Shown here piece after piece: positions 15,106 to 30,093 of a DNA stretch of 64,000 nt. Position 1 is the first letter of the stretch. Each line of letters opens with the position of its first letter. Made by a program: the position numbers and the translations under genes. Below the pieces are notes generated by a model that was not told the DNA's origin, made no database searches, and saw nothing but the letters and a program-made list of their open reading frames with translations. The stretch is taken from positions 186,001-250,000 of the IMG/VR virus record IMGVR_UViG_3300042549_005931. One strand, given 5' to 3'.

Positions 15106-16733
15106 TACTCTACATTTAATCCAATCTTATTTCCTTTTCCATCAACTGCATCTGCTAATTCAGTATAGAATAAACCTGCTGTATTTGTTAGTGGAACATT
15201 AGATGTGAAAGTTAATTTGTATGGTGTACCAGTTTTTATTCTAGCAGTTTTAATTTGGTCTATTGAACCAAATGTTAATCTTCCATCTTTATTAGTTGAG
15301 AAGTTAGTTATAGATGAACCCGCATCAAATGCAATACCATCCAATGTTAATTTAGAATCATCGTATTTCAAAATAACTTCTAATCCAGCTAATCCTTCTT
15401 GTGATAAATTACCCGTTAAAATAACTTTATTGTTTTCAATTTTAGATGATAAACTTAATGTTGCCGTTCCTGATAATTGATTAGCGTATATACCTTTATT
15501 TGCAACTGTTCTATTCATAGTTCCTTGTCCACCTGTACTATTTCCTGATATTGGTGAACCAGGGTTAGATGAGTGTGAGAAATCCAAATCACCACCAAAA
15601 GCGTATGAAAATAATTCTACTTGATTTGCCGAAGTTATTTTAACTACGTTGTTTGATGGTTCACCACCTACTATGTTTGGAAATGCCGATTGCTTTACCG
15701 ATATAAAATTTAATTCAGTTGCATTTTGTTTTGTTATTCTTGCTTTTGAAGATACATCTTGTCCTAAAATGTGTGCAAATAAGTAATAAGCATCATTTGT
15801 ATTAAAATCACCATCATTAAGTGTTACATTACCAATTGCCTTTTCTATTGCGGGATATTGGAATATAGATGATGTACCATTTAATCCAACATCTGTTACT
15901 GCTAAAAAGGCTCTATAGGCATCTGTTACTGTTACTACGTTATTTAAGTAACTTGCTCCAAAAGTTGGAACAATATAAACACCAAGTGTATCACCAATAT
16001 TAAATTGTTCAAAATCAACTATACCACCAGAACTTAATGGTTTTTGTGATATTGGTGCTCCAGTAAAGTTTGTACTTCCATTGGGATTTACTTTTCTTAT
16101 TTGTACGGATAGTGATGTAATATCAAAATTAGTTGGATACCCAACTTTTACTCTAAATGCTGAAACGTGCTTCACATCAGCATCTGCAAATGATAATTGA
16201 AGAACTTGAGAACCAATTGGTGTGATAGGTGCATCATTTGTTCCTGTTGCAGTTGCTAAATCTAATTTATGTATTCCTTGATAAGTTGAGTTTTCTAATA
16301 AGATAAATCTTTCAGTTGCCCACAAACCATCAATTACCGCATCTGCTCTTTGTGTTGTAAATTGCTTCGATATCCAATCGTTATCTTGTGTATAGTTCCA
16401 AGGTGTTGAAGCATATTGTGCATTCAATTCACCAACTCCAATTGATGGGTTTTGTGTGAATTTATAGTTTGGCCAAGTTGCTTCAAAATTTTGTGCGGTT
16501 TGTCCTTGTGAGAATAAAGTAGGTCCTAACTTTTGTAAGTGTTTGTTTGAGTATTGATAACGCATCCAAAGGTATCTAGGGTTTGTAGTTCCTTTGATAA
16601 TATTATATCTTACAGTAAGTGTGTCACCAACTCTGTAAGGTTTTGAATTAACCACCTCTTGATTGATGATTAATTGCCCAAATGATGTCAATGACATCAG
16701 TATTAATGAGAGAGATACTAATAGTTTTTTCAT
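15105..16733 (-). CDS. secreted dockerin-like + cohesin-like protein
   Basis: signal peptide; VTVTDAY...FNTNDAY; GLEVILKYD; paralogous C-terminal half to 13174..15105. Confidence 0.6.
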   Translation of the reverse strand: MKKLLVSLSLILMSLTSFGQLIINQEVVNSKPYRVGDTLTVRYNIIKGTTNPRYLWMRYQYSNKHLQKLGPTLFSQGQTAQNFEATWPNYKFTQNPSIGVGELNAQYASTPWNYTQDNDWISKQFTTQRADAVIDGLWATERFILLENSTYQGIHKLDLATATGTNDAPITPIGSQVLQLSFADADVKHVSAFRVKVGYPTNFDITSLSVQIRKVNPNGSTNFTGAPISQKPLSSGGIVDFEQFNIGDTLGVYIVPTFGASYLNNVVTVTDAYRAFLAVTDVGLNGTSSIFQYPAIEKAIGNVTLNDGDFNTNDAYYLFAHILGQDVSSKARITKQNATELNFISVKQSAFPNIVGGEPSNNVVKITSANQVELFSYAFGGDLDFSHSSNPGSPISGNSTGGQGTMNRTVANKGIYANQLSGTATLSLSSKIENNKVILTGNLSQEGLAGLEVILKYDDSKLTLDGIAFDAGSSITNFSTNKDGRLTFGSIDQIKTARIKTGTPYKLTFTSNVPLTNTAGLFYTELADAVDGKGNKIGLNVE

Positions 16734-17242
16734 AGTTTTTCCGTTAATTTGTTAATTAATGTTTGACATGTTTTTTTAATTGAAGACGAAAGTGCTTGTT
16801 GATTTATAGTTTCACTCGCCTCACCTGTTATTATTGTTGATGTTGAAACTTCCGAACTGGATTCTTCAGCCACATACTCTTTTATTTTCTTTCCTTCTTT
16901 GTTTTTTATTACTCCACGAATAACAACCAATGTTTCCTCAACGTCTGAGTGAAATACCGATACGTTACGTTTTGTTCTATTTACATCGAAGTATAGAATT
17001 TCTGCACTAATGACAAAATCTGCAGATTCTGAACTTTCTACAATGTCCAAATTTTTATCTTGTAAAATTTCTTGAAAAATATTCTTTACCCCGAAAGCAA
17101 AATTTCGATTGCCGGTAAACTTTCCTATTTTAATTTTATTGTCAACATTTGACACACACACAGTCTGAGCGACTGCACCAAAACCAGATATTAGCACAAA
17201 GAATGCCAGTATCAAAAAAGTGGAGAGAGGTACTTTTTTCAT
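16730..17242 (-). CDS. secreted protein, CsgG/LptE-like fold suspected
   Basis: signal peptide; first gene of the surface operon. Confidence 0.45.
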   Translation of the reverse strand: MKKVPLSTFLILAFFVLISGFGAVAQTVCVSNVDNKIKIGKFTGNRNFAFGVKNIFQEILQDKNLDIVESSESADFVISAEILYFDVNRTKRNVSVFHSDVEETLVVIRGVIKNKEGKKIKEYVAEESSSEVSTSTIITGEASETINQQALSSSIKKTCQTLINKLTEKL

Positions 17243-17337
17243 ATTCTATAAATATGTGTAAAATCATTTTAAGTACATCACATTTATGTTATATCACATA
17301 TCTCCAAAAAATATTTTAAATTATTTTTAATACTTTC

Positions 17338-17368
17338 TTGATTTTGTCAATACTTATATATACATTTG
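17338..17368 (+). promoter_or_regulatory. Bacteroidota-type promoter for leader 1/tRNA array 1
   Basis: TTG at 17338-17340 and TACATTTG (TAnnTTTG -7 element) at 17361-17368. Confidence 0.65.
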
Positions 17369-17390
17369 TAAAAATTAAATAAAACATTCA

Positions 17391-17492
17391 ATGAAACGCT
17401 TTACACATATCACGTTTACTACATTCGCAACCAAATGGTGTGCGATGGGTGAGATTGGTATGTCTCGAGGTTTCGATTGTAATATAGGATAG
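17391..17492 (+). CDS. attenuator leader peptide 1 (MKRFTHITFTTFATKWCAMGEIGMSRGFDCNIG)
   Basis: 33-codon ORF between promoter and terminator; codons match tRNA array 1; ends GGA TAG TAA. Confidence 0.8.
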   Translation: MKRFTHITFTTFATKWCAMGEIGMSRGFDCNIG

Positions 17493-17520
17493 TAAGAAAG
17501 TTTACATTAATATAATATAA

Positions 17521-17556
17521 GAACCTCGGGACAAAATCTCGGGGTTTTTTGTTTTT
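17521..17556 (+). terminator. attenuator terminator abutting tRNA-Ala
   Basis: GAACCTCGGGA-CAAAA-TCTCGGGGTT + T tract; 5' arm complementary to 17463-17473. Confidence 0.85.
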
Positions 17557-17626
17557 GGGCCGGATGTCAATGGCTGACCATCTGATTTGCAATCAGAATG
17601 AAAGGGTTCGATTCCCTACGTGTCCA
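17557..17626 (+). tRNA. tRNA-Ala(TGC)
   Basis: TCTGA-TTTGCAA-TCAGA anticodon arm, G3-U70, bulged acceptor stem. Confidence 0.8.
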
Positions 17627-17659
17627 CAGTATTAGTTCTTTGAAATCGTGGGTAAAATT

Positions 17660-17732
17660 GTCTATGTGGCGCAACGGTTAGCGCTCCGACCTGATACGTC
17701 GGCGGTTGGTGGTTCGAATCCATCCATAGACA
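17660..17732 (+). tRNA. tRNA-Ile(GAT)
   Basis: cloverleaf, loop CTGATAC. Confidence 0.92.
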
Positions 17733-17737
17733 CATTT

Positions 17738-17810
17738 GGAGACGTAGCTCAGTTGGTAGAGCACCGGCCTGAAGAGCCGGGTGTCGGTGGTTCAAATCCA
17801 CCCGTCTCCA
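17738..17810 (+). tRNA. tRNA-Phe(GAA)
   Basis: cloverleaf, loop CTGAAGA. Confidence 0.95.
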
Positions 17811-17816
17811 CATTTT

Positions 17817-17890
17817 GACCTCTTAGCTCAGTTGGTTAGAGCACCTCACTTTTAATGAGGGAGTCCCGCGTTCGAGTCGCGGAGGGGTCA
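17817..17890 (+). tRNA. tRNA-Lys(TTT)
   Basis: cloverleaf, loop CTTTTAA. Confidence 0.95.
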
Positions 17891-17895
17891 CACAC

Positions 17896-17967
17896 GCGTC
17901 TATGGTGTAATTGGCAGCATACCGGTCTCCAAAACCGGCGGTCGAGAATCGTTGTCTCGTGGACGTG
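17896..17967 (+). tRNA. tRNA-Trp(CCA)
   Basis: loop CTCCAAA; atypical T-loop ATCGTTG. Confidence 0.85.
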
Positions 17968-17972
17968 CAAAT

Positions 17973-18044
17973 AGTTCTATGGTGTAATGGATAGCACCTG
18001 ACACTACGGATGTCAAAGTTGGAGTTCGAGTCTCTATGGAACTA
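17973..18044 (+). tRNA. tRNA-Arg(ACG)
   Basis: cloverleaf, loop CTACGGA. Confidence 0.92.
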
Positions 18045-18052
18045 CGTTAAAA

Positions 18053-18127
18053 GGTGAATTGGCTGAGTGGTCAAAAGCAACGGTCTGCAAAACCGTACAA
18101 TCGTTGGTTCAAATCCAACATTCACCT
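18053..18127 (+). tRNA. tRNA-Cys(GCA)
   Basis: cloverleaf, loop CTGCAAA, U73. Confidence 0.92.
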
Positions 18128-18128
18128 C

Positions 18129-18203
18129 GGTGACTGTCGTCTAATGGTAGGACAAAGGTTTGTGGTGCCTTCAATAAGAGTTCGATTCTCTTCAGTCACA
18201 CCA
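18129..18203 (+). tRNA. tRNA-His(GTG)
   Basis: loop TTGTGGT, encoded G-1 and CCA. Confidence 0.9.
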
Positions 18204-18208
18204 TATAT

Positions 18209-18276
18209 TGCGGGGAGGAGGGTTCCCAACCAGTCTCATAAGCTGTGTTTTCCGGTTTCGACTACCGGCCCCGCAA
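18209..18276 (+). tRNA. tRNA-Met(CAT), atypical
   Basis: TGCGGGG/CCCCGCA acceptor, loop CTCATAA, shortened D-arm. Confidence 0.7.
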
Positions 18277-18340
18277 CAAAATATTTTAGATTTTTTTTAC
18301 ATATATTTTTTTATTTAAAAAACTTCTTTTATATTTGTCA

Positions 18341-18477
18341 TAAGATAATGGTTTTCACCATTCAACGGATGTCGACAATCCAGAGTGGAACCTGAAAACA
18401 TAACCCTCTGCCGAGCGCTCATAAAACTGAAGAAGCAGTCAAGAATGGAACGAAACGGGTATTCCATCATTATCTTA
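18341..18477 (+). ncRNA. unidentified structured RNA
   Basis: 12-bp closing stem TAAGATAATGGT/ATCATTATCTTA, internal stems, TATATTTG promoter just upstream. Confidence 0.55.
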
Positions 18478-18480
18478 CAG

Positions 18481-18554
18481 GCTCCCTTAGCTCAGTTGGC
18501 CGGAGCGCCTCACTTGTAATGAGGATGTCGGCGGTTCGAATCCGTCAGGGAGCT
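18481..18554 (+). tRNA. tRNA-Thr(TGT)
   Basis: cloverleaf, loop CTTGTAA. Confidence 0.95.
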
Positions 18555-18560
18555 CAACAA

Positions 18561-18701
18561 GGTTCTATAGTTGTTTAGGTCGCCCCTTAAACAATGAGTG
18601 GGTTAATGATGGTTTAGTATTACTACCCGATATTCTAGATGAAGCGTGGTAAGTGATTAAACAAGTAATTAACGAGATGGGTTCGATTCCCATTAGAGCC
18701 T
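18561..18701 (+). ncRNA. tRNA-like RNA (acceptor + T-arm, expanded interior)
   Basis: GGTTCTA/TAGAGCC acceptor, ATGGG-TTCGATT-CCCAT T-arm, no canonical anticodon arm. Confidence 0.6.
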
Positions 18702-18750
18702 CAAAACATAGGATTAATTACCCTATGTATGGATGGTTCGAAACATCCGA

Positions 18751-18824
18751 TTGATTATGGTGTAATGGTGCACGGAGACCGTAATTGGAGCTCAGGATTA
18801 AGGTTCAAGTCCTTTTTAATCAGC
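18751..18824 (+). pseudogene. degenerate tRNA
   Basis: TTGATTA/TAATCAG acceptor, TGGTGTAATGG D-arm, GGTTCAAGTCC T-arm, broken anticodon arm. Confidence 0.5.
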
Positions 18825-18829
18825 AACAA

Positions 18830-19215
18830 GTGACGACTGTGGTGTAACCCCACGGTATATGAAATCCAAAATGGTCCTGTTGAAGCCGGAATAGTCATAC
18901 AGGTCAGGAGAGAGTTAGTATAAGTTGGGAGTAATTAACCAATTGACGAAAACTAATCACCAAGAAATTGGTCATGATGTCCAACGGGGATAATAAACTT
19001 GTTAATTTGTTAATTTAAGTTCTGGTGGGTTTTATTAAATAATTTTGTTTCATTTTAAACAATTTTAGTTATAAGGAAGTTGAAGAATTGTAACCACCAA
19101 CATAGAAATTAGATTAACAAAGTTTAATTACGGGAGGTGTCTCGTATAACTAATACAATCCCCTAATAGGGACTGATGTAAGATTAAGATTCTTACGACA
19201 CCGAACGTGATTGGA
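18830..19215 (+). ncRNA. unidentified ~390-nt structured RNA
   Basis: nested long-range stems, no ORF. Confidence 0.45.
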
Positions 19216-19224
19216 TTATTAACC

Positions 19225-19299
19225 GCCCCTATCGACAAGCGGTTAAGTCACGTCCCTTTCACGGATGAGTCACGGGTTCGATTCCCGTTGGGGGTACCA
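19225..19299 (+). tRNA. tRNA-Glu(TTC)
   Basis: cloverleaf, loop CTTTCAC, CCA encoded. Confidence 0.95.
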
Positions 19300-19310
19300 A
19301 AAGTTTTATT

Positions 19311-19559
19311 ATGTTAGAACAAATATTGGAGTACTTTGGGGAAGAAGAATTTCTTAAAGCGGACGGATTCGATGAAGCCGTTATTGGTGTTGAAGAAAGT
19401 TCGATGAGACTAATCTATTCAGTTACCAAATGTCTTGAGATATTGGTTACCAATGAAGAGATGTCATTAGAAGAAGCTATTGAGTATTTTGACTTTAATG
19501 TTAGAAGTGCTTATGTAGGTGATAAAACACCCATTTGGTGTGAGGATGGTTTTATGTAA
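19311..19559 (+). CDS. hypothetical phage protein
   Basis: ADGFDEAVIG...EAIEYFDFNV...AYVG motif typical of large phages. Confidence 0.7.
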   Translation: MLEQILEYFGEEEFLKADGFDEAVIGVEESSMRLIYSVTKCLEILVTNEEMSLEEAIEYFDFNVRSAYVGDKTPIWCEDGFM

Positions 19560-19560
19560 T

Positions 19561-19749
19561 ATGAAAAAAATAATATATCTACTAATTGTAATTTTTACAT
19601 TATCCGGTTGTTTTACTTATGTAAGAGAAACTGGTAGATTTTACCCACGTAATAGAAATTTACAACCAAACCATAGAATGGGTATTAACGGTTACCATTT
19701 AAGAAATCAATATTATTTTAGACATATTCAACCATTAAAAAAAAGATAA
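19561..19749 (+). CDS. small lipoprotein
   Basis: MKKIIYLLIVIFTLSGC lipobox from ATG 19561. Confidence 0.6.
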   Translation: MKKIIYLLIVIFTLSGCFTYVRETGRFYPRNRNLQPNHRMGINGYHLRNQYYFRHIQPLKKR

Positions 19750-19791
19750 AGGATTGATTTTCAACATTTTTATATTTATAATAAAAAAGAT

Positions 19792-20139
19792 ATGTTAGAC
19801 TTAAAAGAACTTTTAATTATGCTAGGATTGGCGGTTGGTGGACCATCACACAGTCAAGATATGACTTTTTATCGACAAAAATTATCTAATGAAATGGTTT
19901 TAGAACAAAAACTAAAAGAAGAAATTAAAGCCTTAGAATATAGAAAACTTTGGGACGATGTAAATCAAAAAGAAAATGCAGATTTTGCAGTTAGGTGGTT
20001 TAAAGATAAAAAATCGGAAGATAAATTAGGTAGTTCAAAAAAAGATTTAAATAACACAAGAAAAAAAATAAAAGTATTAAAAAATATCCTTGAAAAAGAT
20101 TCATTAGATAAGGTAGTACCTCAAACTCAGGTACTTTAA
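19792..20139 (+). CDS. hypothetical coiled-coil protein
   Basis: ORF preceded by TATTTATA. Confidence 0.6.
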   Translation: MLDLKELLIMLGLAVGGPSHSQDMTFYRQKLSNEMVLEQKLKEEIKALEYRKLWDDVNQKENADFAVRWFKDKKSEDKLGSSKKDLNNTRKKIKVLKNILEKDSLDKVVPQTQVL

Positions 20140-20178
20140 TTTATTTTCGGATATTTATATATTATAAAAACAAAAATT

Positions 20179-20601
20179 ATGAAAAAATTATTATTTATTT
20201 TCGCGTTAGTTCTTGGTTGTACTTTTAGTTCAACTGCTCAAGAATTGTTTGGTTCCGCAACTAACAAAGGTATGGACGGATACTTAACTGGTGGTTACAT
20301 CAAAAAAGGATGGGGTGCCTATGTTGGTTTTAGATATGATGCTGACCCTATGGTTAGTACTAAAACAGGTAGCTTTGATAAAACTATGAAATTTGGTGTT
20401 ATTCGTATGTTTGCGAGTGAGAAAATTATGATGGGTGTGGGAATCCAACCTGTCGATAATGTTAACAAACCAAATGTTTTTATTGGTTACGCACCATTAA
20501 AATCGGAAGGATTGAAGATATGGGTTATTGGTAATTTAGTAGGTTCTAATTTTACACCAGGTCTTGGTTTAACTTATAAATTATCACAAATTAATTTTTA
20601 A
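20179..20601 (+). CDS. small outer-membrane beta-barrel-like protein
   Basis: signal peptide, Gly/aromatic beta strands, terminal Phe. Confidence 0.55.
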   Translation: MKKLLFIFALVLGCTFSSTAQELFGSATNKGMDGYLTGGYIKKGWGAYVGFRYDADPMVSTKTGSFDKTMKFGVIRMFASEKIMMGVGIQPVDNVNKPNVFIGYAPLKSEGLKIWVIGNLVGSNFTPGLGLTYKLSQINF

Positions 20602-20627
20602 AAATTTACTATTAAATAAAACTTTTG

Positions 20628-20635
20628 TATATTTG
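20628..20635 (+). promoter_or_regulatory. Bacteroidota-type -7 promoter element for leader 2
   Basis: TATATTTG 18 nt before leader ATG. Confidence 0.6.
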
Positions 20636-20653
20636 TATATACTTATTAGAAAA

Positions 20654-20758
20654 ATGAAGAATTTATTAACAACAATATCGCTTAGTTTGAACCCGTCATA
20701 TAATGATAATGGGAGAGGCGTGCAGACGTTAATAAGTTCGGACCAAATATTAGGATAG
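20654..20758 (+). CDS. attenuator leader peptide 2 (MKNLLTTISLSLNPSYNDNGRGVQTLISSDQILG)
   Basis: 34-codon ORF; codons match tRNA array 2; ends GGA TAG TAA like leader 1. Confidence 0.8.
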   Translation: MKNLLTTISLSLNPSYNDNGRGVQTLISSDQILG

Positions 20759-20781
20759 TAAATAAAAAAACTAAAATAAAG

Positions 20782-20822
20782 AAACCCGAACGACTTAAAA
20801 AATTGTTCGGGTTTTTTGTTTT
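20782..20822 (+). terminator. attenuator terminator before tRNA array 2
   Basis: AAACCCGAACGA/TTGTTCGGGTTT + T tract; 5' arm complementary to GTTCGG at 20736-20741. Confidence 0.85.
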
Positions 20823-20902
20823 AATGAAACTTTTACATATATTTGTAAAACAGTTCATCACATAGGTGGTGAAAAATGTTCTTTGACATTGTGAGAAAAA
20901 AT

Positions 20903-20987
20903 GCTCGGGTGGTGTAATGGTAGCCACGAAGGACTTAAAATCCTTTGGACAGAAATGTCCGTGCCGGTTCGAGTCCGGCCCCGAGTA
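20903..20987 (+). tRNA. tRNA-Leu(TAA)
   Basis: type II cloverleaf, loop CTTAAAA. Confidence 0.95.
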
Positions 20988-20989
20988 CA

Positions 20990-21099
20990 AATGTAATGAC
21001 TTAGAAATAAGTGACGGAACAGACGCTATGTATGAAATGGAAACTTTCGAAACTCGTATAAAAGAGTGAATTAGACACAAACCGTACAGACATTACATT
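20990..21099 (+). ncRNA. unidentified structured RNA between tRNAs
   Basis: AATGTAATG/CATTACATT closing stem, ACTTA-GAAA-TAAGT hairpin, ACGG/CCGT. Confidence 0.5.
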
Positions 21100-21104
21100 A
21101 AATT

Positions 21105-21178
21105 GGTTCCGTAGCTCAGCTGGATAGAGCAACTCTCTTCTAAAGAGTAGGTCTTTGGTTCGAATCCAAACGGAATCA
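21105..21178 (+). tRNA. tRNA-Arg(TCT)
   Basis: cloverleaf, loop CTTCTAA. Confidence 0.95.
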
Positions 21179-21183
21179 CATAT

Positions 21184-21258
21184 AGAGTAATGGGCTAATT
21201 GGTAAGCCGCTACATTTGGGTTGTAGACATCATGGGGGTTCGAGTCCCTCTTATTCTA
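21184..21258 (+). tRNA. tRNA-Pro(TGG)
   Basis: cloverleaf, loop TTTGGGT. Confidence 0.88.
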
Positions 21259-21266
21259 CATTAAAT

Positions 21267-21351
21267 GGTTTCGTTGCCGTAGTGGCCGAACGGTCCAGAC
21301 TGTTAATCTGGTGAGTAACATCCATCGTAGGTTCGAATCCTACCGAGACCG
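21267..21351 (+). tRNA. tRNA-Asn(GTT) with long variable arm
   Basis: loop CTGTTAA, G73, ~15-nt variable region. Confidence 0.85.
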
Positions 21352-21403
21352 CTTGACTTTTTCGAATATTTTATGTATTTATTGTTAACTAAAAAAATTA
21401 ATA

Positions 21404-21943
21404 ATGGGTAAGTACTTCGAAAAAATTATAGATTTAAGAAATCAAGGAAAAACATATAAGGAAATATGTGTTGAATTAAACTGTGCAATGTCAACAGTGT
21501 CATATCACTGTAAGTTAAATAAATTGGGTGGCCACACTGATAGACTGACAGATGAAGATAAGGTAGAACTTCAAAAATTATACAATGAAGTTGGCAGTTT
21601 AAAAAAAGTGGCTAAATTAAAAGGTTATGCATTTCAAACTGTTCAAAAATATGTAACAATAAAAAATAGAACAAAAAAAGTTTCAAAATCCGAAGCGGTA
21701 ATAGAATGGAGAAAAAGAACTAAGATAAAATTAGTTGAATATAAAGGTGGTAAATGTCAAATTTGTGATTACAATAAATCATTCAATGCATTACATTTCC
21801 ATCATATTAACCCAAATGAAAAAGATTTTTCAATATCAGGTAAATCATTATCATTTGACAAATTAAAAACTGAGGTTGATAAATGTATTTTAGTATGTTC
21901 AAATTGTCATTCTGAAATACATGAAGGTTTAATAACATTATAA
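21404..21943 (+). CDS. HTH + HNH homing-endonuclease-like protein
   Basis: CQIC...FHHINP...C.LVCSNCHSEIH; N-terminal HTH motifs. Confidence 0.85.
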   Translation: MGKYFEKIIDLRNQGKTYKEICVELNCAMSTVSYHCKLNKLGGHTDRLTDEDKVELQKLYNEVGSLKKVAKLKGYAFQTVQKYVTIKNRTKKVSKSEAVIEWRKRTKIKLVEYKGGKCQICDYNKSFNALHFHHINPNEKDFSISGKSLSFDKLKTEVDKCILVCSNCHSEIHEGLITL

Positions 21944-21944
21944 C

Positions 21945-22020
21945 ACCCTTATGGACAAACGGCAAAGTCACTGGTTTTAGGCACCAGGTTTTATAGGTTC
22001 GAATCCTATTAGGGGTACCA
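21945..22020 (+). tRNA. tRNA-Leu(TAG) with short variable loop
   Basis: loop TTTAGGC, 5-nt variable loop, CCA encoded. Confidence 0.85.
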
Positions 22021-22037
22021 ACTAAATTTTTAATATT

Positions 22038-22157
22038 ATGGCAGTTACATCAAAAAGAGTTGCAAAGAAAGCTAGTAAAGCTTTAAGTAGTAAAAAAACG
22101 AGTAAAACAACTAAGACTCTTGCAGGTAGTGCATTGAGACAAAGAAGAAAAAAATAG
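22038..22157 (+). CDS. small basic protein (MAVTSKRVAKKASKALSSKKTSKTTKTLAGSALRQRRKK)
   Basis: 39-aa ORF between tRNAs; not in ORF track. Confidence 0.7.
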   Translation: MAVTSKRVAKKASKALSSKKTSKTTKTLAGSALRQRRKK

Positions 22158-22162
22158 TAATT

Positions 22163-22245
22163 GGGAGTGTTGAGCAACGGTTGCTTAGCAGACTGTAAAT
22201 CTGTGGTCTACGACATTGGCGGTTCGAATCCGTCCACTCCCACCA
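22163..22245 (+). tRNA. tRNA-Tyr(GTA)
   Basis: type II, loop CTGTAAA, CCA encoded. Confidence 0.92.
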
Positions 22246-22258
22246 AAACAAAAAAACT

Positions 22259-22819
22259 ATGGAATTCATTTACAGAAGAGAAAACGTATTATCAAAAGAA
22301 CAATGTGATGAGATAATACAAAAGTTTGAAGAGTCTGATTTTAAATTGGCAGGTATTACCGCATCAGGTGTTAACGAATCTATTAAAAAATCTACAGACC
22401 TTACATTTCATCATAATACTTTAGATGATGAAAAAATTAATAATCTTTGGGGTGATACTGTTCGTAAAATTGTTCGTGATTTAAATTATCACATGAACAA
22501 ATACAAGGAGGAAAATGAATACTTGAAATTTTTTAAAATAGAGATGGATTCATTCAACATTCAAAAGTACGAACCAAATGGTGGATTTTATACTTGGCAT
22601 TGTGAAACCATTCATTGTTTAGATAGAGTTACCGCTTGGATGATATATCTTAATGATGTTGATGATGGTGGTACTGAGTTTATGAAACAAAAACACACGG
22701 AGAAAGCTGAAGCGGGTAAGTTAATTATATGGCCAGCAGATTGGACACATGCACATCGAGGTCAGGTTAGCACTACCAAAACAAAATATATTTTAACAGG
22801 TTGGTTTAGTCAAAAGTAA
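22259..22819 (+). CDS. 2OG-Fe(II) oxygenase (prolyl-hydroxylase-like)
   Basis: WHCE, YLNDVDDGGTEF, THAHRG, KYILTGW. Confidence 0.85.
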   Translation: MEFIYRRENVLSKEQCDEIIQKFEESDFKLAGITASGVNESIKKSTDLTFHHNTLDDEKINNLWGDTVRKIVRDLNYHMNKYKEENEYLKFFKIEMDSFNIQKYEPNGGFYTWHCETIHCLDRVTAWMIYLNDVDDGGTEFMKQKHTEKAEAGKLIIWPADWTHAHRGQVSTTKTKYILTGWFSQK

Positions 22820-22820
22820 T

Positions 22821-23387
22821 ATGGAATTCATTTATAGAAAAGAAAATGCATTATCATTAGATTTATGTAATGATATAATTACTAAATTTAATGAATCTAA
22901 TTTACCTGAACCGGGTGTAGTAGGAAAAGGTGTAGTTGAAGAAATAAAAAAATCGATAGATTTATCTTTCCATGCCGATTCATTAAACACTAAAGAATTA
23001 CAAGATATATGGGGTCCACCATTGGGTGAAAGTATTCCAATTATTAATTCATGTGTTCAAGAATATTGTGATAAATTTGAATATTTGAAAATGATGAGTT
23101 CATTTAAAATGGAAGCTTTTAATATTCAAAAGTATGAACCGGGTGGTGGATTTTATACTTGGCATTGTGAAGCTACTTTAAAAATAAGACGTGTTGTTGT
23201 TTGGATGGTTTATTTAAACGATGTTGACGATGGAGGAACCGAATTTATACATCAAAACCATATCGAAAAAGCGGAAGCTGGTAAATTATTGTTGTGGCCG
23301 GTTGATTGGACACATGCACATAGAGGACAAATTAGTTATACCAAAACAAAATATATTTTAACAGGTTGGTATTCTATACCCCAATAA
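22821..23387 (+). CDS. 2OG-Fe(II) oxygenase, tandem paralog
   Basis: same motifs, high identity to previous gene. Confidence 0.85.
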   Translation: MEFIYRKENALSLDLCNDIITKFNESNLPEPGVVGKGVVEEIKKSIDLSFHADSLNTKELQDIWGPPLGESIPIINSCVQEYCDKFEYLKMMSSFKMEAFNIQKYEPGGGFYTWHCEATLKIRRVVVWMVYLNDVDDGGTEFIHQNHIEKAEAGKLLLWPVDWTHAHRGQISYTKTKYILTGWYSIPQ

Positions 23388-23434
23388 TCGTTGAAATATA
23401 CGATAACAGATTTTATCGTTAGATTAAACGATAT

Positions 23435-23508
23435 GGACTTATAGCTCAGATGGTTAGAGCAGGTCGCTCATAACGACAAGGTCACAGGTTCGAGCCCTGT
23501 TTGGTCCA
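23435..23508 (+). tRNA. tRNA-Ile2(CAT, lysidine type; reads ATA)
   Basis: loop CTCATAA; GGACTTATAGCTCAG body resembles Ile2 rather than Met. Confidence 0.75.
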
Positions 23509-23588
23509 CAAAAAGTGTCTTGGTATGCTCTGACGAAAGTCAACGACAAGGTCTCGGTAGGCAGAACGCGTCTGATTCTACCCAAAAC

Positions 23589-23662
23589 AGAAGATTAGCT
23601 CAGTTGGTTAGAGCATTTGGTTTACATCCAAAGGGTCATAGGTTCGAATCCTATATCTTCTA
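23589..23662 (+). tRNA. tRNA-Val(TAC)
   Basis: cloverleaf, loop TTTACAT. Confidence 0.92.
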
Positions 23663-23729
23663 CAGAAAACTGAGATAGGATATTATTGATATGGATACAA
23701 TTCCTGATAATATTGCTACTCAGTTGATT

Positions 23730-23805
23730 GCGAAAGTAGCTCAGTTGGTAGAGCATTACCTTGCCAAGGTAAGGGTCGCGAGTTCGAATCTCGTTTTTCG
23801 CTCCA
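23730..23805 (+). tRNA. tRNA-Gly(GCC)
   Basis: cloverleaf, loop TTGCCAA, CCA encoded. Confidence 0.95.
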
Positions 23806-23919
23806 TAAGGAGCTCCCGCTTTAAGGTGAAGGACACGCGGGCGAATAACTTTCAGGGTAAGTTGTAAAAGAACTCGAAACCTTAAGTCTAGTGTGGGAGA
23901 GACTCCTACCCACACACAA

Positions 23920-23991
23920 GCGAATATAGCACAGCGGTTAGTGCTCTGGTCTTCCAAACCGGAAACGACAGTTCGAATCTGTCTATTCGCT
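23920..23991 (+). tRNA. tRNA-Gly(TCC)
   Basis: cloverleaf, loop CTTCCAA. Confidence 0.93.
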
Positions 23992-24000
23992 CTATTAATC

Positions 24001-24073
24001 GGGATTGAGGTCAAACGGTTAAGATGTCGCCCTGTCACGGCGCACGGAGCGGGTTCAACTCCCGTCAGTCCCG
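24001..24073 (+). tRNA. tRNA-Asp(GTC)
   Basis: cloverleaf, loop CTGTCAC. Confidence 0.9.
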
Positions 24074-24076
24074 CAT

Positions 24077-24147
24077 TCCTCTATGGTGTAACGGTAACAC
24101 AACTGTTTTTGGTGCAGTTATTCATGGTTCGAATCCATGTAGGGGGT
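24077..24147 (+). tRNA. tRNA-Gln(TTG)
   Basis: cloverleaf, loop TTTTGGT. Confidence 0.92.
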
Positions 24148-24150
24148 CAA

Positions 24151-24347
24151 TGAGTAAGAGATACTCAGCAGTCTTTAATCCAAGACTCATTTAAAAATGG
24201 ATAGGATAATAGACTGGACATCCTTAAACGCCAGTCTCTTGGGAATAAAGCTGGAAAATCGTCCTTGCTCCCAGTAACGATTGACTTTTTAATGAGGGAT
24301 GCCTCGCAGGTTTTTCAAACAGCTAAATAACCGAAATAACTACTCAC
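24151..24347 (+). ncRNA. unidentified ~200-nt structured RNA
   Basis: TGAGTA/TACTCA ends, GACTGG/CCAGTC hairpin, potential pseudoknot AATCGT/ACGATT. Confidence 0.55.
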
Positions 24348-24372
24348 ATATAATCTCAATGTGGGGAAACAA

Positions 24373-24454
24373 GGAGAGGTGGACAATGGTCGTTGAGCGG
24401 TCTTGAAAACCGTCGGGTGTAAAAGCTTTGCAGGTTCGAATCCTGTCCTCTCCG
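24373..24454 (+). tRNA. tRNA-Ser(TGA)
   Basis: type II, loop CTTGAAA. Confidence 0.9.
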
Positions 24455-24511
24455 CACCCTACAATCCCATGTCGGCTCGAGTGGGTGAGAGTATAGGTAT
24501 CGGGCCCTTAT

Positions 24512-24600
24512 AGAGGGTTGGGTGAGTGGCTTAAACCAGCAGTTTGCTAAACTGCGGATGGGGTTAAACCTGTCCACCGGTTCGAATCCGGTATCCTCTA
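24512..24600 (+). tRNA. tRNA-Ser(GCT)
   Basis: type II, loop TTGCTAA. Confidence 0.93.
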
Positions 24601-24614
24601 CACTATTTATATGA

Positions 24615-24809
24615 ATGATATTACAACTTAATCCAACAATACCAATTATACGTGTAAGTGACGGAATGAAAGGTTACGCATTTATGGTTATCGATTATTC
24701 TCAAGAACATGATTTATATTTCACATGTGGAATGGATGATGGTGAAATTTGGACATTAAATAACAAAGAAATTAGGTTACAAAATAACATTACGTTAAAT
24801 AGAAATTAA
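24615..24809 (+). CDS. hypothetical protein
   Basis: 64-aa ORF MILQLNPTIP... Confidence 0.7.
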   Translation: MILQLNPTIPIIRVSDGMKGYAFMVIDYSQEHDLYFTCGMDDGEIWTLNNKEIRLQNNITLNRN

Positions 24810-24812
24810 CAT

Positions 24813-24964
24813 TGTAGTGTGACGAAATTGGCAGACGTACCCTCCTGTCTCGGGGGTGTGGAACAAGAAATAGATTGATAATATTAGGGGGTAGACCACC
24901 AGCTTGCAAGCGTCATGTTATCAGTTGAATCTCCACTTGAGTGGTTCGAATCCCTCCACTACAG
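24813..24964 (+). ncRNA. tRNA-like RNA (GTC loop) with ~80-nt variable arm
   Basis: TGTAGTG/CACTACA acceptor, D-arm, CCCTC-CTGTCTC-GGGGG arm, long paired insert, GGTTCGAATCC T-arm. Confidence 0.7.
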
Positions 24965-24966
24965 CT

Positions 24967-25812
24967 ATGAAAATATTATTTATTAACGATTTCCAAGGTG
25001 TTGATTATTTAAATGATACCATATTTCACGGTGGACGAAGTCTATTTGGTGAAAATTTTGTAGAATCAAATGATGCTTGGTACATGTATGATGATATAAC
25101 ACCACACACCAAAAGTTCATTATATGGTATGGGGTTTACTATTGCAGGTAAATTAAATAGGATATCTATCGACACCACTAATATTCTTGAAAAAATTAAA
25201 GATAGGTTTTTTGATTTAATAATTTATGGTTCAGTTCATAGAAATATTTCTTATTTTGATGAAGTAATCAAATCATATAAATCAAATGAAATTGTTTTTT
25301 TAGATGGTGAAGATGAAACATATTTTAATGAAAAAATAATTGGATATGGGGTTTATTTTAAAAGAGAATTAATCAAAGAAAGAGAATGTGTTTTACCAAT
25401 AAGTTTTAGTATTCCAAAAGAATTGATTAATATTAATACATGTAAAGAAAAAGTTTTAGCAATGCCTTCATCTTATGAAACGGGATATATTTTTAATAAA
25501 GAAAATGATTATTATGAAGAATATAAAAAATCATATTTTGCATTAACAAAAAAGAAAGGCGGATGGGATTGTTTAAGACATTATGAAATATTAATGAATG
25601 GTTGTTTACCATTGTTTCATAATTTACACGAATTACCCAAAAATATAATGATTCATTGGGATAAAAATTTGTTACAAGAATGCCTCAATCTATTTTGGGA
25701 ATTCAGATTAGATGAACAAAAATACATAAATTTAAAATCTCGAGTTGTTGATAATCTCCATAATAATTTAACAACTGAAAGTATGGTTAATTATATATTA
25801 TCAAAATTATGA
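24967..25812 (+). CDS. putative glycosyltransferase
   Basis: true start ATG 24967 (MKILFINDF); KKGGWDCLRHYEI...GC.P GT-B-like motif. Confidence 0.6.
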   Translation: MKILFINDFQGVDYLNDTIFHGGRSLFGENFVESNDAWYMYDDITPHTKSSLYGMGFTIAGKLNRISIDTTNILEKIKDRFFDLIIYGSVHRNISYFDEVIKSYKSNEIVFLDGEDETYFNEKIIGYGVYFKRELIKERECVLPISFSIPKELININTCKEKVLAMPSSYETGYIFNKENDYYEEYKKSYFALTKKKGGWDCLRHYEILMNGCLPLFHNLHELPKNIMIHWDKNLLQECLNLFWEFRLDEQKYINLKSRVVDNLHNNLTTESMVNYILSKL

Positions 25813-25866
25813 TAGGACACTACAGCTAAACCATTAAAATATTAATTGATAAAATGAAAAAATAAA

Positions 25867-26328
25867 ATGAAACAATTCAAAACCCTCCATGGTAAACCGA
25901 TACCAGAGGTTGTAGAGTACATCAAGGATTACATCTCAACAAGAGAGAATGTTCAAATTCTCATCGGTTCCGACTCACAATGTTATGCTAACACAAAGAC
26001 CGTTTACGGTGTTGTTATTGCTCTTTACACTTCCGGTAAAGGTGCACATGTATTGTGTACACGTGAGACGGTTCCTATGGAGAGGAATATGAATCTTCGT
26101 TTAATGACTGAAGTTTGGAAGTCTATTGAACTTGCAGAATATCTTAGAGAAAACGGTATTCAAAAAGCCGACTTTATTGATATTGATTTAAACCCTGATA
26201 GAAAATACAAATCAAACAGTTCTTTAAGACAAGCAATTGGTTTTGTTGAGGGTATGGGTTATCAAGCAAGATGGAAACACGAAGGTGCAATTATAACATA
26301 TGCCGCTAATCATTTAGTAAGATTATGA
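25867..26328 (+). CDS. RNase H-like YkuK (DUF458) family protein
   Basis: IGSDSQ...RLMTEVWKS...IDLNP motifs. Confidence 0.75.
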   Translation: MKQFKTLHGKPIPEVVEYIKDYISTRENVQILIGSDSQCYANTKTVYGVVIALYTSGKGAHVLCTRETVPMERNMNLRLMTEVWKSIELAEYLRENGIQKADFIDIDLNPDRKYKSNSSLRQAIGFVEGMGYQARWKHEGAIITYAANHLVRL

Positions 26329-26527
26329 GCAAGGATATGGACCGTCTTAGTGAAGACAATTACAAACAACGAAATGAATCTTATATTCAGAGACTTCGAG
26401 ATGAACGTGAAGAGAAATTAAAGAAACGTTATGAAGAATTGAGAGGAACAAAACTGGAAGAAAAAAAAGAAGATAAATGATTTCGTATTTTAAAATTTTT
26501 TATTTATATTTTTAAAAAATAAGAAAT

Positions 26528-26737
26528 ATGAAATGTATCAAAAGTAAAGACGGTGAGATTCGTCGAGTGTCAGATGTAGATGCTGACAACAAAGTTAAAG
26601 TACATGGATGGAAGTTTGTACCGAAGTCTGAATGGAAATTAAACGTAAGAGGTTCGGTAAATGTTAAACAAAACGCACCGAAAGAAAAGAAAGAAAAAGT
26701 AGTTAGTGAGTACAAAGAAAAAAAATCAAAAAAATAA
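26528..26737 (+). CDS. small basic hypothetical protein
   Basis: IRRVSD...GWKFVPKSEWK. Confidence 0.65.
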   Translation: MKCIKSKDGEIRRVSDVDADNKVKVHGWKFVPKSEWKLNVRGSVNVKQNAPKEKKEKVVSEYKEKKSKK

Positions 26738-26835
26738 TTTAATATATTTTGTTTTTTAAATTTTTTTTCGTAAGTTTGTAAAAGAAATCACAACGGTGGT
26801 TTTTTAAAAGAGAAAGTTCTTTGAATTAAAGATAT

Positions 26836-27603
26836 CGGCGGTCTATAGTCGTTAAATAAACTACGAAAGTAGGATAAAGTGAATCGAAAGTTATAAACGG
26901 TTTGCGGTTTCGGTAACGGAACTCGAGTAGACAAGCAAGACATCATCTGTCCTTAGTTCCGAGGGTAACACTGTAGGAAATGGATAGGTGACTTGGCAAT
27001 CTGAGTTGTCAAGTTGAGGTGGGAACACTAATAAGAGTAACTTGTGGAACTTTACAAGAAATGGGACCTCCAATCTCACTATTGTGTTGTTCAATATCAT
27101 GGGTACCTTAAAATCGAAAGGTATGGTGAAGTACGAGTGGTGTCGTTATCATCCTTAATAAAACCCTACCAAGAGTTTTATTTTGAAGGTGTCCAAAAGT
27201 ATGGAGGTTGGGAGACTTCAGAGAGTAGTTTAGTATTCTGTTGTTCAAAAGATAATGGAGCTGGCAGACGGGCCACTACTTTCAAGATTCGGAAACAAAA
27301 AACCCTTACAATGGTGTAAATCAAAAAAAAGGAAAAGTGCTCGTCAGTCGTTGGAAACAGGTGACTACATAGTCGTGAGATGTTCACGGCCATAGAAGAC
27401 CCCAAGTCCGATATGATTTTTGAGAAAAGTTCTATATAGTGCGGCGGTATTGTATAGAGAAGAGTAACGAGAGAGTATTCAACGACTTAAGGATTGGTTA
27501 ATCTAATTGACCGTCACTGATTGGTACAGTTCAAAAGACTGTGGATAAGAGAAGAATCAATAATGTCTCTAAAGTCAATCACAAAATGGTGTAATCTCAG
27601 CCA
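26836..27603 (+). ncRNA. giant structured ncRNA, GOLLD-like
   Basis: ~770-nt purine-rich non-coding tract with many hairpins, own TAAGTTTG promoter and boxA-like site, near tRNA arrays of a phage. Confidence 0.6.
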
Positions 27604-27736
27604 AATTAAAAAGACATTTTTAGGTTTCTTGGAACCATAATAATCCAAGTGGTGGAATTAACCTTAATCGGTTGGCCCTTAGGGATGGAGAAATCTATCC
27701 CTTTTTTTATTCATTTATTTTATTTATATTTGTTTT

Positions 27737-28483
27737 ATGAGAATCGTTTGTATTTCTGACACCCATGACCTTCATCAAAAGATGACACATAAGTTACCGA
27801 AAGGTGATGTGTTAATCCATGCGGGTGATGTTAGTAATATTGGAGAACAACCCGATGTAACACGATTTATTCATTGGTTCATGAATATTGAAGGATATGA
27901 TTCTAAAATATTTATTGCCGGTAATCACGACTTTGCATTTGAGAGAATTAATGAACCACACCATAAAGGTGATTTTGAATGGTTATCTAATTTAATCAAT
28001 GAAGAAAATCTATCTCAATCTAATGTAACATATTTGGAAGATAATTTCATTACCATTGAAAGTCCTGAATTCTCAAGACCAATTAAGATTTATGGTAGTC
28101 CTTGGCAACCTGAATTTTATAATTGGGCATTTAACTTACCACGTGGTGGTGATGATATGTTTGAGAAATGGAATATGATACCCGATGATACAGATGTATT
28201 AATCACACACGGACCGGCAGAGAATGTTAGGGACTTTGTTCCTAATGGTCAAATCGTTGGTTGTGGTATGTTAAGACATCGTATTGAAACAATTAGACCG
28301 GCATTACATGTATGTGGTCACATACATTACGCATACGGTGTGTCTTTAGTTAATAGTATTATGTATGTGAATGCGGCAATATGTGATGAAAGATATTCAC
28401 CATCAAATAAACCTATTGTCATTGACCTAAAAGAAGTTGATGGCGAGATTTTAGCTTACTTAGTAGAAGATGAATCCAATTAG
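27737..28483 (+). CDS. metallophosphoesterase
   Basis: SDTH, HAGD, AGNHD, THGP, GHIH motifs. Confidence 0.9.
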   Translation: MRIVCISDTHDLHQKMTHKLPKGDVLIHAGDVSNIGEQPDVTRFIHWFMNIEGYDSKIFIAGNHDFAFERINEPHHKGDFEWLSNLINEENLSQSNVTYLEDNFITIESPEFSRPIKIYGSPWQPEFYNWAFNLPRGGDDMFEKWNMIPDDTDVLITHGPAENVRDFVPNGQIVGCGMLRHRIETIRPALHVCGHIHYAYGVSLVNSIMYVNAAICDERYSPSNKPIVIDLKEVDGEILAYLVEDESN

Positions 28484-29135
28484 TGTAGTTATCTCAACAA
28501 GAGAAATTGATAATGATTATTTGAAACATGTTAGTAAGGTGTTTTCACATCCTAAAACTGAAATCATTATTTACGAAAACCAAGGTGATTTTTCGTTACC
28601 TGAATTGTATAATAAGGGATTAAAGGATTCAAAAAATGAGGTTGTTGTGTTCATGCACGATGACCTCATCATTGAAACACCTAATTTAACCCCCAAAATC
28701 TTACGACTGTTCAACGATAATCCTGAGTATGGTATAATCGGTGTTGCCGGTACTGATAATCTCCTGAGTGGAATGTGGTGGCAAGATAGAGAATCTATGC
28801 AAGGTCAAGTCGGTCATGAACATGAAGGAAGAAAACATACCAACAAATACTCCGGTACATTTGGTGAAAACTTAAAAGAAGTTGTTGTAATTGATGGTTT
28901 GTTTATGTGTATTCATAAGGAGAGAATTAAACATAACTTCAACGAACAATTTGAAGGATTTCACTTCTACGATTTACCAATCTGTTTGGAGAATTATCTT
29001 GACGGAGTAAAAATTGGTGTAACAACCAAAATTAAATTAACACATAAGTCAATTGGTGTTACAAATAAAAAGTGGGAGAAAAATAAGTTGTTATTTGAAG
29101 CTCTATATGAGAAGAAATTACCAATTAAGATTTAA
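28470..29135 (+). CDS. glycosyltransferase (GT2-like)
   Basis: YNKGL, FMHDD, IDGLF, FHFYD motifs. Confidence 0.75.
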   Translation: MNPISVVISTREIDNDYLKHVSKVFSHPKTEIIIYENQGDFSLPELYNKGLKDSKNEVVVFMHDDLIIETPNLTPKILRLFNDNPEYGIIGVAGTDNLLSGMWWQDRESMQGQVGHEHEGRKHTNKYSGTFGENLKEVVVIDGLFMCIHKERIKHNFNEQFEGFHFYDLPICLENYLDGVKIGVTTKIKLTHKSIGVTNKKWEKNKLLFEALYEKKLPIKI

Positions 29136-29170
29136 CCCTAATAATCAAATATTTATATATAAAAAACATT

Positions 29171-29422
29171 ATGAAAAAATTAATAGAATTTATTAAAAAC
29201 CTTTTTGTTAAAGTTGATAAGATTGAACAAGAAGTAGAACAAATGGTTGAAAAAAGTAATGCTTCACCTGAAACTAAAGTTAAACTTAAAAAAGAGTTAA
29301 AGAAAATTGATGCGGTTGAAGAACAAGCTAAAGAAGCCGTTATTGACGCTGTCGAGAAAGTTGAAGTGGCAGTTGAGGTTGTAAAGAAAAAGAAACGTTA
29401 TTACAGACCAAAGAAAAAATAA
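29171..29422 (+). CDS. hypothetical protein
   Basis: 83-aa ORF after TATTTATA. Confidence 0.6.
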   Translation: MKKLIEFIKNLFVKVDKIEQEVEQMVEKSNASPETKVKLKKELKKIDAVEEQAKEAVIDAVEKVEVAVEVVKKKKRYYRPKKK

Positions 29423-29468
29423 ATTGGTATAGTAAAATATTTTACATACATTTGTAAAACATTTACAT

Positions 29469-29870
29469 GGGGATGACCGGCATTTGACTGGCGTTTGTAT
29501 TGTAAGTGGGCACGTAGTCAGACTTCATCTATGACTTAAATAAACGGTGGAAACTTTTAGACGGCAACGTTTACAAAAACATGGAAATTGCGGGTATTCT
29601 TGCAACTTCTAACGTAGCAGTAGCCTAAGGCAAACCTACAACGGGTCGACTGACATATAACCTAGGAACAGAAGTCTTCAAAGTGTGATACCACTCAGAG
29701 TGTCAAAGGTCTCGTTCAGAGTGCTACCTTAAGTGAACTCGACACAGTTATTGGTAACGATGTCAAAATAGGAACCAATTATTTGTCTATTGAGAACTAA
29801 TAGAATAAACGTGTAGTCCATTTATTATTCGGCGGACAGGACCAGGGTTCGAATCCCTGCATCTCCACCA
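29469..29870 (+). ncRNA. ssrA: tmRNA
   Basis: GGGGATGA...GAC 5' end, GGTTCGAATCCC...CTCCACCA 3' end, tag ORF GNVYKNMEIAGILATSNVAVA* at 29563-29628. Confidence 0.93.
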
Positions 29871-30093
29871 AAACAAAAACCCATCATTTGATGGGTTTTT
29901 TTATATCTTTATGTTCTCAGGTCCTATAACGACCAAAAGGTCCGAAGACCCTTTTGTCGAGATTTAAGAACACCTCCTTTTCGTTTATAAAAGTTATCGT
30001 CTAACGGCGACCAAACCAATCAGACTCTCTTATAAATATCGCAAAAAAAAGAGTTAGACGATTTATCTAACTCTTTTAATGAAAAAAATTCAA

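Follow-up and report, generated by a model that had tools for sequence, protein, structure and literature searches.

A putative leader-peptide attenuator in front of the tRNA genes of a freshwater jumbo phage

A jumbo phage from freshwater metagenomes carries a 33-codon open reading frame (Leader 1) and an intrinsic terminator directly in front of its first set of tRNA genes, and across 87 related loci the codons in the first part of this ORF follow the anticodons of the tRNAs encoded downstream in the same locus. On this comparative evidence, the unit is most likely a ribosome-mediated transcription attenuator, similar to that of trp, that opens transcription of the tRNA genes when any of their own products is limiting, although translation of the ORF, termination at the hairpin and the response to tRNA supply are all inferred. 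The sequence analyzed here (the window) is a 64,000-nucleotide stretch, positions 186,001 to 250,000 of IMG/VR record IMGVR_UViG_3300042549_005931, and is part of a 269-kb contig (the loci denoted L001 and L038 are identical to it). The window is AT-rich, at 28-40% GC, and contains a tmRNA, a GOLLD RNA and HNH endonuclease genes located between tRNAs. Searches of GenBank phages for near and distant DNA matches yielded only tRNA matches or noise, and there is thus no cultured relative among them. The features of the two leader units are listed in Table 1.

Table 1. Features of the two leader units and their tRNA sets, in window coordinates.
Feature	Position	Strand	Description
Promoter-like element	17337-17368	+	CTTG (17337-17340), a 20-nt spacer, then TACATTTG (17361-17368); resembles the Bacteroidota -33/-7 type
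Predicted leader hairpin P1	17389-17479	+	Segment 1 pairing with segment 2; its base pairs CAAUGAAAC, which contains the start codon, with GUUUCGAUUG; proposed anti-antiterminator
Leader 1 ORF	17391-17492	+	33 codons plus TAG; translates to MKRFTHITFTTFATKWCAMGEIGMSRGFDCNIG
Sensor codons 2-20	17394-17450	+	Identity tracks the downstream tRNA genes
Segment 2	17463-17476	+	Strand that pairs with the 5' arm of the terminator; 11-nt register TCTCGAGGTTT at 17463-17473 (codons 25-28), complementary to GAACCTCGGGA at 17521-17531; 7-nt register of the family at 17470-17476
Small hairpin P2	17492-17505	+	At or just after the stop codon (GUAAG-AAAG-UUUAC)
Intrinsic terminator	17519-17556	+	13-pair stem-loop at 17519-17549; T-tract to 17556
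tRNA set 1	17557-19299	+	Ala-TGC (17557-17626), Ile-GAT, Phe, Lys, Trp, Arg-ACG, Cys, His and Met-CAT (about 18209-18277), then Thr (18481-18555) and Glu (19225-19299)
Second promoter-like motif	18330-18337		TATATTTG
Leader 2 unit	20628-20822	+	TATATTTG at 20628-20635; 34-codon ORF at 20654-20758; segment 2 GTTCGGA at 20736-20742; terminator stem at 20782-20791/20805-20814, T-tract to 20822
tRNA set 2	20903-24601	+	Leu-TAA, Arg-TCT, Pro, Asn, Leu-TAG, Tyr, Met, Val, Gly, Gly, Asp (24001-24073), Gln, Ser and Ser; an HNH gene and two oxygenase-like genes are interspersed

An earlier note, made from the sequence alone, had claimed that Leader 1 spells out the 11 tRNA species downstream and that a segment just after the sensor codons, as attenuation requires, can pair with an arm of the terminator. 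The observation was confirmed. Codons 1-19 use only M, K, R, F, T, H, I, A, W and C, and Glu is codon 21. Default ARAGORN found nine of the eleven tRNAs. The tRNA-Ala was a weak call, with an Rfam score of 32.5 bits against a cut-off of 29, and was found by ARAGORN only at a relaxed threshold, as was the tRNA-Met. However, both are conserved at the same place in relatives, and the list of 11 tRNAs is therefore right. In total, the window contains 22 tRNAs by default ARAGORN, and 25 when these two and the Asp found by Rfam are added. The note had counted 25 of 33 codons as matching; we count 26 by amino acid, or 25 if ATA is excluded because Ile-GAT does not read it. Of 777 ATG-started ORFs of at least 25 codons in the window, only this one has 19 of 19 codons in the 11-residue set, and no other reaches 17. 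Only 2 of 44,345 stop-free 19-codon windows do so. With a per-codon probability of 0.48, p^19 is about 8e-7. Under strict wobble rules, 16 of 19 codons (codons 2-20) are readable by the 11 tRNAs, against a background of 38.5% in the long ORFs of the phage (binomial 6e-5).

The unit is conserved. A search with the upstream 170-aa protein retrieved 28 loci, and the terminator pattern, which is unique in the window, was found once per contig in 56 IMG/VR viral contigs and in at least 120 metagenome contigs. In contrast, a scan of genome contigs with this pattern gave only unrelated terminators without leaders. Alignments of the relatives showed a promoter-like element (TTG, about 20 nt, TAnnTTTG), an invariant AUG context, an ORF of nearly constant length, mostly 31-33 codons, and the terminator. 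The frame is open in 39 of 41 distinct leaders, and in 0 of 41 in the other two frames, and most alignment gaps inside the ORF are 3, 6 or 9 nt. In the enlarged set, 115 of 119 distinct leaders keep an ORF. TTG and TA..TTTG are invariant or nearly invariant columns in 18 diverged relatives. The TAnnTTTG motif alone is not enriched in the window (97 found against 108 expected), so that its assignment rests on conservation and position, and a scan for sigma-70 promoters was uninformative (36 sites found against 35 expected). Searches of PHROGs and Pfam gave nothing for the leader peptides or the upstream genes.

We compared each leader with the tRNAs found downstream of its own terminator. In 37 loci, codons 2-20 are readable under strict wobble rules by the locus's own tRNAs within 2 kb in 447 of 703 cases (64%), compared to 30% expected from phage codon usage and 46% when the arrays were permuted among loci. 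None of 5000 permutations reached the observed value, and the same was true within each of the two main leader types (0 of 5000 each). In 87 loci, the match was 60% against 43% with permuted arrays, with a permutation maximum of 48%. The enrichment is confined to the first 20 codons: the positional profile peaks at codons 12-17 and falls to background from codon 23, and codons 21 onward as a group are at background (31-32%). The other two reading frames gave 27% and 24%. Asking whether a leader's own array scored best was noisy, because larger arrays read more codons whichever leader they face, and we relied on the permutations, the frame control and the comparison of the two tRNA sets described below instead. 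The match is nonetheless incomplete. Codons 2-4 are fixed by structure, while Thr, Ser, Asp, Glu and Gln codons often refer to tRNAs located 1-3 kb downstream, beyond inserted genes and promoter-like motifs, such as the second motif in the window, which is followed by a 15-codon ORF without a terminator. A few loci (L189, L140, L208 and L105) carry a type-A leader but no detected Ala, Ile, Phe or Lys tRNAs.

The tracking extends to the level of isoacceptors. Where Arg-ACG lies downstream, the ratio of CGN to AGR codons is 44:1, although AGA makes up 66% of the Arg codons in the ORFs of the phage. CTA/CTG codons occur 13 times where Leu-TAG lies within 2 kb and never in the 72 loci without it, and AGT/AGC codons go with Ser-GCT. 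The earlier note had framed the signal as specific to amino acids, but this matching suggests instead that tRNA species are what is monitored. Lineages with different arrays have correspondingly different leaders. Arrays starting Ala-Ile-Phe-Lys-Trp, followed by Arg/Cys/His, go with ..FTICSKWADER.., while arrays starting Pro-Asn-Trp-Leu-Gln go with ..SNQLNWNEQP.. on the same peptide head and tail. Tyr-Pro-Ser-Ser-Ala-Trp-Cys goes with ..ASWSYSPCSAYPAGS.., and Cys-Trp-His-Thr goes with ..TTWHQEC.., whereas its sister with Cys/Trp/Gln/Thr/Glu, in which Gln takes the place of His, has ..TWQQTCE... Locus L066 has no Thr tRNA and no Thr codon, and has Ser-GCT together with AGT codons.

A scan of the window for further small ORFs with a terminator in front of tRNAs found only Leader 1 and a second unit, Leader 2, which precedes tRNA set 2, has a different terminator, and is conserved in 14 relatives. 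In 10 phages with both units, Leader 1 codons 2-20 are readable by set 1 in 144 of 190 cases and by set 2 in 48, while Leader 2 codons are readable by set 1 in 24 cases and by set 2 in 139 of 190 (Fisher 1e-31). Since genome and codon usage are the same in both comparisons, this is a clean internal control. In most relatives, the Asp and Ser tRNAs belong to set 1, and Leader 1 contains D and S. In the window and its close relative L005/L006 (one contig, identical leader), these tRNAs belong to set 2; here, Leader 1 lacks D and S in its sensor and Leader 2 has gained D. However, Leader 2 has a conserved TAnnTTTG plus GTTCTTTGACAT between its terminator and tRNA-Leu, so array 2 may also have its own promoter.

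The Leader 1 terminator is the strongest terminator-like site in the tRNA region. All 12 consensus pairs are kept in 38-40 of 40 sequences, two of them with double compensatory changes. RNAalifold recovered only the terminator from the 40-sequence alignment, and the leader helices were therefore tested one sequence at a time and by column counts. A 7-nt segment at codons 25-27 (GUCUCGA and variants) is complementary to the 5' arm of the terminator. The seven pairs are kept in 37-40 of 40 sequences, and one of them switches between A-U (24) and G-C (12) together with the arm type. In 114 leaders, the association between heptamer and arm type is nearly complete: arm CCUCGGGAC goes with GUCUCGA (48) or GUCCCGA (6), and arm CCCUGAGAC goes with GUCUCGG (17) or GUCUCAG (14). 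A sequence's own arm binds better than the swapped arm in 38 of 40 and 88 of 106 cases. The subgroup of the window uses a register 7 nt upstream, which is exactly the 11-bp pairing pointed out in the earlier note and includes 2 G-U pairs. Its ensemble probability is 0.9 in the transcript cut after the 5' arm, and between the window and locus L007 this register shows two double compensatory changes.

Segment 2 is otherwise predicted to pair with the start-codon region (AUGAGAC with GUCUC) at the base of hairpin P1, which is part of the minimum free energy (MFE) structure of the window (z = -4.7). The same outer helix is in the MFE of 33 of 40 relatives and its outer six pairs are kept in 34-40 of 40 sequences, but this helix hardly varies, so that covariation says little. 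Hairpin P2 is also present in the MFE, and a hairpin at this place was found in relatives with 55 different stem sequences, including strand-swapped variants. Folding with a 30-nt ribosome footprint gave the antiterminator for stalls at codons 2-20 and lost it from codon 22; its probability was about 0.85 for stalls at codons 2-18 and 0 from codon 22. In the window, the probability was 0.9 and then 0, and the antiterminator was the MFE even with the full terminator present when a ribosome was placed at codon 10. Leader 2 behaved in the same way. The boundary at about codon 20-22 coincides with the point where codon-tRNA matching stops, and these two independent lines of evidence agree. With the complete terminator present, however, thermodynamics favor the terminator in 36-40 of 40 relatives even with a stalled ribosome, and the switch must therefore be kinetic, as in trp. 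Furthermore, without any ribosome, the transcript cut before the 3' arm already folds into the antiterminator in 26 of 40 relatives, leaving the untranslated default state uncertain.

Taken together, we consider it likely that Leader 1 is a leader-peptide attenuator that gates a phage tRNA operon, although the coupling of transcription and translation in Bacteroidota is not established here. In this model, a host-type promoter starts a transcript whose first 100 nt encode the peptide, and codons about 4-20, on the 5' strand and apex of P1, are a sampler of the codons read by the tRNAs encoded directly downstream. When a ribosome is held up on any of these codons because the cognate charged tRNA is scarce, P1 stays open, segment 2 pairs with the 5' arm of the terminator, and RNA polymerase reads into the tRNA genes. 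When all of these tRNAs are plentiful, the ribosome runs on to codons 22-33 and the stop, covering segment 2, and transcription ends at 17550-17556, just before tRNA-Ala. If no ribosome loads, P1 plus the terminator would be the stable state, subject to the uncertainty noted above. The result would be negative feedback on tRNA supply, with Leader 2 doing the same for the second set. Most sensor codons occur only once or twice, rather than in tandem runs, and the sensitivity to a single tRNA may be modest.

More broadly, phages of this group probably run their tRNA genes under demand control, in which a shortage of any one tRNA, whether from a codon-usage mismatch with the host or from host nucleases that cut tRNAs as a defense, opens transcription of the whole operon. 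This would be a naturally evolved sensor with many inputs, whose specificity is rewritten whenever the array gains or loses a tRNA, as in the change from His to Gln, the loss of Thr, or the move of Asp and Ser from one operon to the other. It would give phage tRNA arrays a regulatory logic and bear on why large phages carry so many tRNAs, either to supplement codons or to replace tRNAs destroyed during infection. The codons of the leader would also predict which tRNAs belong to one transcription unit, and the unit could offer a compact model for programmable sensors of tRNA availability.

We also considered the possibility that the leader is translated and does monitor the supply of the downstream tRNAs, but that the output is not premature termination; the terminated leader RNA or the peptide might act in trans, or stalling might control processing or stability of the tRNA precursor, in which case the hairpin would simply be the end of a small sentinel transcript. 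The terminated product would be a highly structured RNA of about 175 nt with conserved hairpins P1 and P2, the head and tail of the peptide are conserved as amino acids, and the promoter-like motif following Leader 2 is as expected for a separate transcription unit. However, in Leader 1 the first tRNA starts 1-14 nt after the T-tract, leaving no room for a promoter, and the covariation of segment 2 with the 5' arm has no purpose unless the terminator is being opposed. We regard this alternative as unlikely. It is more doubtful still that the ORF is an ordinary small protein gene with its own terminator, resembling the neighboring tRNAs through shared ancestry or phage codon usage. The ORF is conserved in length and partly in sequence, and phage tRNAs generally match phage codon usage, but the match exceeds the codon-usage background two-fold, is confined to codons 2-20 and to one frame, separates set 1 from set 2 within one genome, uses rare codons such as CGC and CGT rather than AGA, and changes with the array while the head and tail of the peptide stay the same. 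Neither peptide has a hit in Pfam. A ribosome-free RNA that reads anticodons directly, like a T-box, is very improbable: tRNA-responsive antitermination exists and the leader is highly structured, but the matching triplets are contiguous in one frame that begins with a conserved AUG, is kept open, and ends at a conserved stop, and most of them lie inside helices rather than in a specifier loop. Chance is refuted by the permutation tests and the two-set comparison and by the conservation of the unit in more than 100 distinct sequences with tracking codons, even though the 11 amino acids cover about 48% of random codons in the window.

Clustered tRNA genes are also transcribed as a polycistronic precursor under the known forms of control, namely promoter-level growth-rate and stringent control in bacteria and read-through from upstream promoters in the phage T4 tRNA cluster, but none of these appears to use a translated leader. 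We found no report of a leader-peptide attenuator in front of tRNA genes, although the literature searched does not cover all journals and priority cannot be excluded; if correct, this would be the first. A 2010 survey stated that leader-peptide systems were then known only in Proteobacteria and Actinobacteria, plus its own Firmicutes cases (PMC2965389). T-box riboswitches likewise perform tRNA-responsive antitermination upstream of genes that restore the supply of charged tRNA, but a T-box binds one uncharged tRNA directly through a specifier codon and the T-box motif, without a ribosome, whereas the leader has a translatable frame with many codons. A covariance model search of 16500-30500 at E <= 1 gave no match to any Rfam family within 17243-17556, including the T-box (RF00230) and the His, Leu, Thr and Trp leaders. 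In translation-speed sensing leaders of the ermC/ermB type (contrasted in PMC2965389), a short ORF also reports how well ribosomes are elongating, but these respond to drug-stalled ribosomes on a specific peptide and mostly control translation, while here codon identity covaries with the downstream tRNA genes and the output structure is a terminator.

The pheM leader of pheST and the hisS leader peptides (PMC2965389) apply leader-peptide attenuation to genes of the translation apparatus and sense charged tRNA of the matching specificity. They control aminoacyl-tRNA synthetase genes and monitor a single amino acid, whereas the unit described here would control tRNA genes themselves and monitor many. 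The architecture is that of the classical leader-peptide attenuators (general definition in PMC1183508) of amino-acid operons (trpL, hisL, leuL, thrL, ilvL and pheL of enterobacteria), in which a short leader ORF has codons cognate to what the operon supplies, and ribosome position decides which of three mutually exclusive helices (1:2, 2:3, 3:4), ending in an intrinsic terminator, is formed; in the present unit, the role of the 1:2 helix is the least certain of these. As in thrL and ilvL, more than one amino acid is represented. In contrast to these leaders, the downstream genes are tRNAs and not biosynthetic enzymes, the sensor is a mixed string of 7-13 different codon species, mostly one to three of each, rather than a tandem run, matching is at the level of the tRNA isoacceptor, and the element lies in a phage behind a promoter-like element of Bacteroidota type.

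A second leader ORF followed by a terminator precedes the second tRNA set, and the codons of this ORF match that set and not the first. Between the Leader 2 terminator and tRNA-Leu, alignment A3, which comprises Leader 2 and its relatives, showed a conserved TATATTTG followed by an invariant GTTCTTTGACAT. The TTTTTTGTTTT of the terminator could serve as the -33 element for this motif, which may represent an extra promoter for array 2. The motif ATACTTAT is conserved in the promoters of both leaders, but lies on different sides of the TAnnTTTG motif in the two. The positions of these and the other features are listed in the table.

Features in and around the tRNA region and in two Arcicella MAGs, with supporting scores
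Feature	Location	Coordinates	Score
Arg codon 3 (CGC) of Leader 1	window	17397-17399	
Motif ATACTTAT in the leader promoters	window	17350-17357 and 20641-20648	
First tRNA (Ala-TGC)	window	17557-17626	
Interrupted tRNA-like sequence	window	18561-18702	
Leader 2 unit (ORF 20654-20758)	window	20628-20822	
Possible extra promoter for array 2	window	20838-20875	
HNH endonuclease gene and two tandem paralogous genes	window	21404-21943 and 22259-23387	
tRNA called Asp-GTC by relaxed ARAGORN	window	24001-24073	Rfam, 50 bits
GOLLD RNA match	window	27221-27603	280 bits, E 1e-79
tmRNA	window	29469-29870	Rfam, 87 bits
Hairpin at the end of a chromosomal gene	L084 (Arcicella MAG)	1003-1031	
Hairpin at the end of a chromosomal gene	L095 (Arcicella MAG)	3232-3260	

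The first tRNA, Ala-TGC, scores poorly and, by our reading, has mismatches in the acceptor stem, while keeping a G3-U70 pair. It is nevertheless highly conserved in relatives, some of which have a canonical tRNA-Ala at the same place. Codon 3 of Leader 1 is the rarest Arg codon in the long ORFs of the phage (1 of 402 Arg codons), and is read by the Arg-ACG tRNA of the array. Four loci (L189, L140, L208 and L105) carry a type-A leader but have no detected Ala, Ile, Phe or Lys tRNAs after the terminator, which could reflect recent deletions, undetected tRNAs or exceptions to the rule. An additional tRNA, missed by ARAGORN at its default settings but found by Rfam, lies in set 2, a location that fits the D codon in Leader 2. 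A further tRNA-like sequence has matching acceptor halves but is interrupted by an insertion. It was called by ARAGORN only in intron mode at a relaxed threshold, so the call is weak.

The HNH endonuclease gene and the two tandem paralogous genes matching a 2OG-Fe(II) oxygenase/DNA endonuclease PHROG sit between tRNA genes, and similar insertions split the arrays at different places in relatives. A hairpin with the same stem and loop as the terminator of L007, one of the related loci, ends a chromosomal gene in two Arcicella (Bacteroidota) MAGs, with no leader and no tRNA array behind it. This is either a weak hint about the host or a coincidence.

Two known structured RNAs were also recognized in the window. 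The match to GOLLD RNA, downstream of the tRNA region, is full length. The phage also encodes a tmRNA, for which ARAGORN gives a tag peptide, and its presence is interesting next to leaders that may work by stalling ribosomes.
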